Of a stretch of DNA of 64,000 bases, positions 2,468 to 3,774 are shown piece after piece; position 1 is the first letter of the stretch, and every line of letters begins with the position of its first letter. Under the pieces are notes generated by a model that was given only the letters and a program-made list of their open reading frames with translations, was not told the origin of the DNA and ran no database searches. The position numbers and the translations under genes were made by a program. The DNA lies in the IMG/VR virus record IMGVR_UViG_3300028864_000014, positions 1 through 64,000 of that record. The stretch is one strand, 5' to 3'.

Positions 2468-2542
2468 TCGGAATGACAAGATTCGAACTTGCAATAACCT
2501 GGTGTCCAATACCAGTAACCTCTCTCTATGGATCGCATTCCG
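2468..2542 (-). tRNA. tRNA-Pro(TGG)
   Basis: CGGAATG/CATTCCG acceptor, CTGGT-ATTGGAC-ACCAG; atypical D loop and A32. Confidence 0.85.
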
Positions 2543-3106: not shown

Positions 3107-3181
3107 ATTATTAATTGTTTTTATAAAAATCTAAAAATTTTTCAATTTCGTTTTACTTTTCCGAACTATGTTTTTGTTATG

Positions 3182-3268
3182 TCGGGTAGGTGAGATTCGA
3201 ACTCACGATGACTATACGTTCCCTCATGTTCCCAAAACACGTATGCTAACCAACTACACCACTACCCG
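3182..3268 (-). tRNA. tRNA-Pro(TGG) with long variable region
   Basis: CGGGTAG/CTACCCG acceptor, CGTGT-TTTGGGA-ACATG, 18-nt variable region. Confidence 0.85.
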
Positions 3269-3340: not shown

Positions 3341-3399
3341 TCAGGTGAAGAAGAGTCGAACTTCCTTGTGCCTGATCCTGACACTACCACATACACCTG
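3341..3399 (-). ncRNA. D-armless 59-nt tRNA-like element, GAT (Ile) in the central loop
   Basis: CAGGTGT/TCACCTG, 8-nt connector ATGTGGTA, GTGTC-AGGATCA-GGCAC, T arm GGAAG-TTCGACT-CTTCT. Confidence 0.55.
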
Positions 3400-3410
3400 A
3401 TATTTTACTG

Positions 3411-3489
3411 TGACCCAGGAGGGGGTTGAACCCTCATTTTTCATTCCATTATGCACATAGAGTTTAGAAAACTCCGCCATTACAAGGCC
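3411..3489 (-). tRNA. D-armless tRNA-Arg(TCT)-like gene with 23-nt variable insert
   Basis: GGCCTTG/CTGGGTC, connector TAATGGC, GGAGT-TTTCTAA-ACTCT, T arm GAGGG-TTCAACC-CCCTC. Confidence 0.7.
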
Positions 3490-3502
3490 ATTATTTATTT
3501 TG

Positions 3503-3581
3503 TGATCCAGAAGAGACTCGAACTCTCATTTTTCATTCCATTATGCACATAGAATTTAGGAAATTCTGCCACTACAGGACC
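3503..3581 (-). tRNA. D-armless tRNA-Arg(CCT)-like gene with the identical 23-nt variable insert
   Basis: GGTCCTG/CTGGATC, connector TAGTGGC, AGAAT-TTCCTAA-ATTCT, T arm GAGAG-TTCGAGT-CTCTT. Confidence 0.7.
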
Positions 3582-3593
3582 AATTAATTATTT

Positions 3594-3635
3594 AAAAAGA
3601 AAAAACCCAAAGTTGAATAATCATCTTTGGGTTTT
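3594..3635 (-). terminator. Attenuator terminator upstream of the tRNA array
   Basis: Minus strand AAAACCCAAAG-12nt-CTTTGGGTTTT followed by TTCTTTTT. Confidence 0.85.
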
Positions 3636-3688
3636 AACACTATTAAAATATTTTATAAAAATATCAACTTAGATTGTTATCACCCAAA
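3626..3688 (-). promoter_or_regulatory. Antiterminator helix mutually exclusive with the terminator
   Basis: Leader segment TTTGGGT-GA-TAACA (3688-3675) pairs with TGTTA-AA-ACCCAAA (3639-3626), the terminator 5' arm. Confidence 0.75.
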
Positions 3689-3774
3689 TACGCCACTGGT
3701 CTTCCTCCTGTTACGGGAGTAGTTGCAGTTGTTGTGGCTGTGCCTGTTGTGATATGTCTACTAATGTTGTTCAT
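3664..3774 (-). CDS. Putative attenuator leader peptide MNNISRHITTGTATTTATTPVTGGRPVAYLGDNNLS (36 aa, below the ORF-track cutoff)
   Basis: Translated by hand; ThrL-like composition; ATG lies just downstream of the TAATATATA motif. Confidence 0.8.
   Translation of the reverse strand: MNNISRHITTGTATTTATTPVTGGRPVAYLGDNNLS

Follow-up and report, generated by a model that had tools for sequence, protein, structure and literature searches.

The minus-strand transfer RNA (tRNA) operon of IMG/VR virus record IMGVR_UViG_3300028864_000014 runs from position 3581 down to position 2118 of the window, by which we mean the whole stretch of DNA that was analysed, i.e. the first 64 kb of a 235-kb record with 24% G+C and an estimated completeness of about 33%. 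The record comes from peat metagenomes and, judging by the tail sheath, baseplate proteins, DnaB-like helicase, UvsX-like recombinase and ribonucleotide reductase encoded in the window, its source is a very large tailed phage. The first two genes of the operon, here called gene A and gene B, are twin tRNA-like genes of 79 nucleotides (nt) with arginine anticodons. Their anatomy is as follows (R1 is a covariance model of the family to which the twins belong; base numbers are those of tRNA):

3503..3581, minus strand: gene A, putative tRNA-Arg(CCU) with a rearranged D arm, 79 nt, anticodon CCT at 3558-3560; sequence parse; 64.1 bits with R1
3568..3574, minus strand: gene A connector UA-GUGG-C (TAGTGGC), read as U8 A9, N22-N25 (3' strand of the D stem) and N26; 12:23 and 11:24 covary in the family
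3551..3567, minus strand: gene A anticodon arm, 5-bp stem and 7-nt loop UUCCUAA; sequence parse; stem pairs covary in the family
3543..3546, minus strand: gene A GCAU, taken to be the 5' D-stem strand (bases 10-13) and lying 3' of the anticodon arm; C11:G24, A12:U23 and U13:G22 can pair, G10.G25 unpaired
3536..3542, minus strand: gene A D-loop-like strand AAUGGAA, read as A14 A15 U16 G18 G19 A20 A21; near-invariant in the family, with A20 coupled to Arg anticodons
3528..3535, minus strand: gene A tail UGAAAAAU, from the D-loop-like strand to the T stem, ending in AU (putative U48 equivalent); AU near-invariant in the family
3411..3489, minus strand: gene B, putative tRNA-Arg(UCU) with a rearranged D arm, 79 nt, anticodon TCT at 3466-3468; sequence parse; 67.3 bits with R1
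3476..3482, minus strand: gene B connector UA-AUGG-C (TAATGGC), read as U8 A9, N22-N25 and N26; 12:23 and 11:24 covary in the family
3459..3475, minus strand: gene B anticodon arm, 5-bp stem and 7-nt loop UUUCUAA; sequence parse; stem pairs covary in the family
3451..3454, minus strand: gene B GCAU, read as bases 10-13; C11:G24, A12:U23 and U13:A22 can pair, G10.G25 unpaired
3444..3450, minus strand: gene B D-loop-like strand AAUGGAA, read as in gene A
3436..3443, minus strand: gene B tail UGAAAAAU, read as in gene A

Each twin has a 7-bp acceptor stem, in which six of the seven pairs are formed and U6.U67 is a mismatch, and a discriminator A (A73); an encoded CCA end is missing from both. The anticodon loops carry U33 and a purine at position 37 (A37), and the T arms, GAGAG-TTCGAGT-CTCTT and GAGGG-TTCAACC-CCCTC, have loops of the GTTCRANNC type. 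A D hairpin is absent between bases 9 and 26, where five bases are found, and a 23-nt insert, ATGTGCATAATGGAATGAAAAAT, identical in A and B, separates the anticodon arm from the T arm. The parse thus agrees with an earlier description made from the letters alone (the sequence-only reading), which had listed the two genes, the mismatch, the 7-nt connectors, the intact anticodon and T arms and the shared insert, and had noted that the stems of the twins differ in ways that preserve pairing. The 14 differences among the 79 positions leave the insert untouched; one falls in the connector and the others in the stems, the T loop and the anticodon, and they include three full compensatory pair changes (3:70, 30:40 and 52:62) and three changes that keep a wobble pair.

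Relatives of the twins were collected by motif scans over viral contigs, using the insert, the connector alone, the insert core alone, or neither of them fixed; member counts below are among the matches listed. The exact-motif scan for the insert returned 32 viral contigs, 26 of which have the same type of gene, with stems that are different yet complementary. Altogether the family comprises at least 213 distinct members in at least 188 viral loci; earlier subsets consist of 145 members and, in alignment A2, 147 sequences. Acceptor, anticodon and T stems are 93-99% paired across the family (98% in the acceptor stem), with many double-sided changes, relatives abound, and the insert is constrained among them, in line with the suggestion of the sequence-only reading that these genes are under selection on structure and not in decay. 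Model R1, a covariance-model check of the kind that the same reading had proposed, separates the members, at 57-82 bits, from ordinary tRNAs, which score at most 40 bits, and on the 235-kb record the twins (67.3 and 64.1 bits) are followed by a next best match at 28.9 bits.

What has become of the D arm can be seen when subclasses of the family are compared. The subclass of the twins, with a connector (TA-N-TGGC) and an insert core (GCATAA-Y-GG-A) that hardly vary, shows no covariation of its own. In other subclasses, a change in the connector is matched by a change in the four bases directly 5' of the motif AAY(N)GG in the insert:

connector TATCGGA, four bases CCGT
connector TATGCCG, four bases AGCT
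connector TACCTCA, four bases GAGT
connector TATCACA, four bases GTGT
connector TATACCA, four bases GGTT
connector TAATAGC, four bases GTAT
connector TATTCCC, four bases TGAT

We read the connector as U8 A9 N22 N23 N24 N25 N26 and the four bases before AAY(N)GG as 10-13. At least ten dinucleotide-pair combinations occur, all of them complementary. All 213 members have Watson-Crick pairs at both 12:23 and 11:24, and each of the two occurs in four pair types, which is why we conclude that bases 10-21 have left their usual place, after base 9 and before base 22, and now follow the anticodon arm, and that the D stem is predicted to form at long range. In alignment A2, 12:23 is paired in 146 and 11:24 in all 147 sequences, with 68 and 39 double-sided changes, respectively; sliding the partner by one to three columns lowers pairing to about 40%. 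In the 145-member subset, all 290 cells are paired, as compared to a mean of 182 and a maximum of 204 in 2000 shuffles. Of the two flanking pairs, 10:25 is formed in most subclasses and is G.G in that of the twins, and the twins differ at 13:22, with U:A in gene B and U:G in gene A. Arrangements in which the connector pairs directly with a different part of the insert were tried first and discarded. In the GCAT class an alternative register, with a bulged G and C:G in the role of 10:25, may form; the register adopted here fits all classes.

The sequence-only reading had called the twins D-armless and had suggested a D-like arm relocated 3' of the anticodon. There is indeed no D hairpin, and D-arm material does lie 3' of the anticodon. 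On the other hand, the covariation of 11:24 and 12:23 indicates that a D stem is formed after all, at long range, and only bases 10-21 would have moved, with bases 22-25 staying behind in the connector.

Base 13 is followed by a canonical D-loop sequence, A14 A15 Y16 (N17) G18 G19 N20, and the insert ends in AU in 144 of 145 members; the final U is a plausible U48, the partner of A15. The GG dinucleotide, A14, A15 and the T-psi-C loop are conserved in the family. With U8, A9, A14, A15, G18, G19, U48 and the T loop in place, the usual tRNA core could assemble. The helix alone has covariation behind it, and the tertiary contacts are suggested by conservation.

The strongest indirect evidence for placing the displaced strand as a D loop comes from the anticodons. 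Arg anticodons in the family are TCT (134 members), CCT (30), ACG (12), TCG (9) and CCG (1); the others are CAT (12), TAT (11) and GAT (3), which are Ile-type, CAT being possibly Met, and a single TAC (Val). Base 20 is A in 185 of the 186 members with Arg anticodons, the remaining one having U20, and U in 27 of 27 others, and this coupling holds in the scan in which neither the anticodon nor base 20 was fixed. In bacteria, A20 is the main determinant for arginyl-tRNA synthetase (ArgRS), together with C35, U/G36 and A/G73 (PMC9976931). The twins carry A20, C35, U36 and A73, that is, the full bacterial Arg identity set; base 73, counted in 145 members, is A in 72 and G in 57. We infer that the base after GG sits in the structural position of A20, and the coupling suggests that synthetases read these RNAs.

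The genomic context of the members also fits a use in translation. They sit in arrays of tRNA genes, the median number of ordinary tRNAs in the retrieved loci being five; 63 of 145 encode a CCA end; and the loci of 122 of the 134 TCT members lack a canonical tRNA with that anticodon. The tRNAs of Streptomyces phage Mildred21 cover all 20 amino acids, and its sole TCT, TCG and ACG Arg tRNAs, as well as one GAT tRNA, are family members. In Microbacterium phage Zooman the member lies within the array's block of Arg tRNAs. In the source phage of the window, AGA makes up 81.4% and AGG 5.4% of Arg codons. Clustering of the neighbourhoods of 188 loci revealed no dedicated partner protein that recurs beside the members, in keeping with a reliance on host enzymes for processing and charging. 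The recurring proteins are HNH and GIY-YIG homing endonucleases only, found at 66 of 188 loci, about 360 bp (median) from the member, and these would offer a route for spread from phage to phage. In the 235-kb fragment, i.e. a record that is about 33% complete, neither ArgRS, nor a CCA-adding enzyme, nor RtcB was found; a search for an RNA ligase of the T4 Rnl1 type gave no match in the 235 kb, and no control genome was matched either.

On the strength of the A20 coupling, the encoded CCA ends of relatives, the empty Arg slots that members fill and the demand for AGA, we regard it as probable that the twins are working arginine tRNAs with a non-standard strand topology, the UCU tRNA decoding AGA and the CCU tRNA decoding AGG. 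In the proposed structure, U8-A9 would be followed by the 3' strand of the D stem (22-25), base 26 and the anticodon arm, and then by a 4-nt linker, the 5' strand of the D stem (10-13, GCAU), the D-loop sequence A14-A21, an 8-nt tail ending in U48, and the T arm. The long-range D stem would enclose the anticodon arm and stack on it as in a normal tRNA, and the D-loop strand would make the contacts U8:A14, A15:U48, G18:psi55 and G19:C56. The RNAs would be excised from the operon transcript, receive CCA, be charged by ArgRS via A20, C35, U36 and A73, and, once charged, serve the dominant Arg codon of this AT-rich phage. Processing, charging and decoding of the twins are all predictions from sequence.

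Several observations weigh against this interpretation. The long-range helix is short, at two to four pairs, and 10:25 is G.G in the class of the twins. RNAalifold returns three long helices and omits a D stem of 2-4 bp, so that the case for this stem rests on the pair counts, and minimum free energy (MFE) folds of single sequences contain neither the long-range helix nor a sensible tRNA fold. The family was gathered by sequence motifs, and its true breadth and spectrum of identities are therefore known from a sample. Finally, the operon has a canonical tRNA-Arg(TCT) at 2118-2192, which on paper makes gene B redundant and leaves room for a special role. That ordinary tRNA (minus strand) has G18 A19 in its D loop and the T loop UUUGAAU, with an apparent A19:U56 in place of G19:C56, and its acceptor stem is similar to that of gene A.

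The redundancy of gene B is one reason to think of the twins as uncharged decoys or sponges, which would expose an Arg anticodon loop to the host's anticodon nucleases, or to further defence proteins directed at tRNA, and have no part in translation, a role that the sequence-only reading had raised. Phage tRNAs are described as countering tRNA-cleaving defences (PMC11555353), and, within the sequences searched, the family is found in phage sequence only. Nevertheless, a decoy for anticodon nucleases has no need of A20, a purine at 73 or an encoded CCA end, all of which are kept; in most phages the member is the sole tRNA with its anticodon in the array; and the same scaffold carries four different Arg anticodons as well as the Ile-type ones, which a single nuclease specificity cannot explain. 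The A20/Arg coupling, the encoded CCA and the filling of Arg slots in near-complete tRNA sets point instead to charged decoders and leave the suggestion without support. We consider decoys of this kind improbable, though they are the best of the rivals, and give about the same low weight, or slightly less, to a decoy or otherwise specialised role in general.

Less probable still, and in our view quite unlikely, is that the twins are truly D-armless, with the insert forming a hairpin of its own, CAU-AAUGGA-AUG, as a relocated D arm or a variable arm like those of class II tRNAs. Such a 3-bp hairpin can be drawn in the twins, with the GG motif in its loop, and it was a feature of the sequence-only reading. 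As a conserved feature it does not hold: even under a permissive test it is possible in only 86 of the 213 members, and it competes for bases 11-13 with the long-range helix, whose strands many compensatory changes have kept complementary throughout the family.

A pathway in which the transcript is rearranged, much as permuted tRNA genes are processed in the red alga Cyanidioschyzon, with bases 10-21 excised and ligated back in after base 9 to give a canonical cloverleaf, is very improbable, even though the covariation is equally compatible with a helix that exists before such a step or after it. Two-cut, two-ligation pathways of this sort are not known from bacteria or phages; no conserved partner gene stands beside the members, and, as read from the sequence, there are no motifs resembling bulge-helix-bulge at the junctions. 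A recently duplicated, functionless pair of tRNA pseudogenes, which the identity of the insert in both copies might suggest, is close to untenable given the 14 differences that spare the insert and keep pairing, and is refuted by at least 213 relatives in phages of at least three bacterial phyla, with helices kept by compensatory change.

If the twins are indeed decoding tRNAs, any benefit of their topology is a matter for conjecture. One reading, which we hold to be less likely than not, is that it is an adaptation, in which the connectivity of the backbone is altered, the L-shape and the determinants for ArgRS and its isoleucine counterpart IleRS are kept, and decoders of AGA and AGG (and AUA) become invisible or resistant to a host factor. 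Candidates for such a factor, named with the same reserve, include defence nucleases that cleave tRNA, pathways of tRNA decay and modification enzymes, provided that they read the canonical D arm or the variable pocket. If true, this would be counter-defence at the level of the scaffold, distinct from the anticodon-loop changes described so far. The sober alternative is a neutral rearrangement that spread with mobile tRNA arrays.

The family has been seen in phage sequence alone, within the sequences searched. The exact insert motif, sought in one genome per species of 185,579 bacterial and archaeal species (596 Gb), gave 54 matches, about the number expected by chance, none of them tRNA-like, and R1, at E<=1e-7 and with strict filters, had no match in 453 sampled genomes of three bacterial phyla. 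The motif scans also matched three contigs that are named giant-virus MAGs (GVMAG) in IMG/VR, L323, L357 and L396, with parsed members in L357 and L396. The carrier phages infect hosts of at least three bacterial phyla, and cultured ones include phages of Streptomyces, Microbacterium, Agrobacterium, Pseudomonas, Stenotrophomonas, Alishewanella and Limnohabitans. Their members are treated in GenBank as tRNA-Ser, tRNA-Phe or tRNA-OTHER, or are omitted:

Streptomyces BE-cluster phages, e.g. Mildred21: tRNA-OTHER; tRNA-Phe(gaa); two members unannotated
Microbacterium phage Zooman: member not annotated
Agrobacterium phage Atu_ph04: member not annotated
Stenotrophomonas phage SOVA965: member not annotated
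Limnohabitans phage DC31: member not annotated
Pseudomonas phage vB_PsaM_M1: member not annotated
Alishewanella phage Slicko01: member annotated as tRNA-Ser
uncultured 735-kb phage LR756501: record without annotation

In Mildred21 (L388, MF155946), the members at 91367-91442, 73703-73779 and 94857-94933 include a TCG one annotated as tRNA-Phe(gaa), and a GAT and an ACG one that lack annotation. Also among the products of this phage are a tRNA nucleotidyltransferase, an RNA ligase, a polynucleotide kinase, a Ro-like protein and a tmRNA.

Upstream of the twins, also on the minus strand, lie two further features:

3597..3640, minus strand: terminator-like hairpin directly upstream of gene A; sequence and fold
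3664..3774, minus strand: leader open reading frame (ORF) of 36 codons, MNNISRHITTGTATTTATTPVTGGRPVAYLGDNNLS, upstream of the hairpin; translation

The hairpin has a long loop, for which reason a simple terminator scan missed it. Both features are kept in the related contigs L006, L003 and L029, and together they look like a leader-peptide attenuator of the tRNA operon. The sequence-only reading had placed the twins as the first genes after an attenuator, and they are indeed the first after this hairpin. The MFE fold gave no obvious antiterminator. The leader ORF has Thr, Gly, Ala, Pro, Val and Arg codons, which correspond to isoacceptors encoded downstream.

The twin locus was found, as DNA contigs, in four separate peat metagenome runs, and identical copies of the twins are present in two further IMG/VR contigs. 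A strain variant co-occurs in peat runs X1, X3, X5 and X10; within window positions 3412-3427, it has the 3' acceptor strand of gene B changed to CTGGACT, as in contig L006. Assembler contigs from the peat runs end inside the shared 23-nt insert, as expected of a repeat.

Other genes of the operon are unusual in their own ways. The third, at 3341-3400 (minus strand), is a 60-nt tRNA-like element with a perfect 7-bp acceptor stem, a 9-nt connector TATGTGGTA, a hairpin, and a mere AA before a canonical T arm, and it has no D-loop strand. Its hairpin loop varies, being AGGATCA here and 9 nt long, TCGGGATCC or TCGGGTACC, in relatives; R1 does not match it and its top Rfam match, with 21.6 bits, is to tRNA-Sec. 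The element is thus probably tRNA-like without being a decoder. At 2468-2542 (minus strand), there is an unannotated tRNA-Pro(TGG)-like gene, whose D stem is weak and whose acceptor stem, of 7 bp, is CGGAATG/CATTCCG. This gene is missed by ARAGORN and by the Rfam tRNA model and scores 18 bits with R1. Inserts of 12-14 nt are found in the variable regions of tRNA-Pro, two tRNA-Gly and one tRNA-Thr (3181-3268, 2908-2993, 2801-2887 and 2292-2376, all minus strand); that of the tRNA-Thr forms the hairpin ATCT-GAAA-AGAT. Such inserts are unusual for Pro, Gly and Thr identities, and over-long Thr and Val tRNAs are seen also in LR756501.

Genes of this family tend to escape the standard tools. ARAGORN, in its bacterial and metazoan-mitochondrial modes, reports either gene A alone, forced into a wrong cloverleaf of 94 nt that borrows AT-rich upstream sequence, or nothing, and it misses 205 of the 213 members. 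The Rfam tRNA model (RF00005, gathering threshold 29 bits) matched neither twin at E<=10, and the Rfam scan assigned no family to them; some relatives score 29.5-38.7 bits with this model and others have no score. Because both tools and annotations miss the members, phage tRNA repertoires for AGA, AGG, CGN and AUA are probably under-counted, which affects studies of codon-usage matching and of tRNA-based counter-defence. The tRNA core is among the most conserved of RNA folds, and here, in a natural and widespread variant, a 12-nt segment appears to be displaced with all core elements kept; the case bears on the weight of strand topology when ArgRS, EF-Tu, RNase P, the CCA-adding enzyme and the ribosome recognise a tRNA. 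Some of the carriers are cultured phages whose hosts are tractable, which makes experiments feasible, and the scaffold is a possible template for engineered tRNAs.

The phage genes share with canonical tRNA-Arg the Arg anticodons, U33/A37, the A20 equivalent, A73, U8, A9, G18G19 and the T-psi-C loop, and differ from it in that bases 10-21 are located between the anticodon arm and the T arm, and not between 9 and 22. In the red alga Cyanidioschyzon merolae, permuted tRNA genes have their halves swapped, and the mature tRNA is canonical after processing. The order of gene segments likewise departs from the cloverleaf in the phage family; here, however, the displaced piece is an internal segment of 12 nt and nothing suggests that its order is restored. 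With class II tRNAs and allo-tRNAs the family has in common a distance of 18-24 nt between the anticodon and T stems, and one member is indeed a tRNA-Ser in GenBank. A self-contained variable hairpin of the class II kind is, however, not a general property of the family, and Leu, Ser and Tyr are not among its identities.

A review of non-canonical tRNAs contains no phage example and no such topology (PMC7609411). Our full-text search of the literature, with subscription journals outside its coverage, returned no report of a rearranged or missing D arm in phage tRNAs, and, as far as the literature searched goes, this strand topology is previously undescribed in a tRNA.

The nearest described architecture is that of mammalian mitochondrial tRNA-Ser(GCU), in which a short 'D-replacement' connector after the acceptor stem pairs 3' of the anticodon stem and extends the anticodon helix, and the tertiary core is lost (PMC9427863). 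The phage family resembles it in having no D hairpin and in a connector that takes part in an extended anticodon helix, as indicated by the covariation of 23 with 12 and of 24 with 11. The T loop of the mitochondrial tRNA is non-canonical; in the phage family, by contrast, it is canonical, and the D-loop sequence A14, R15, G18, G19, N20 is retained. The family's D-loop strand would join the long helix to the T stem, and its identity appears to be Arg or Ile-type, as opposed to the Ser of the mitochondrial molecule.
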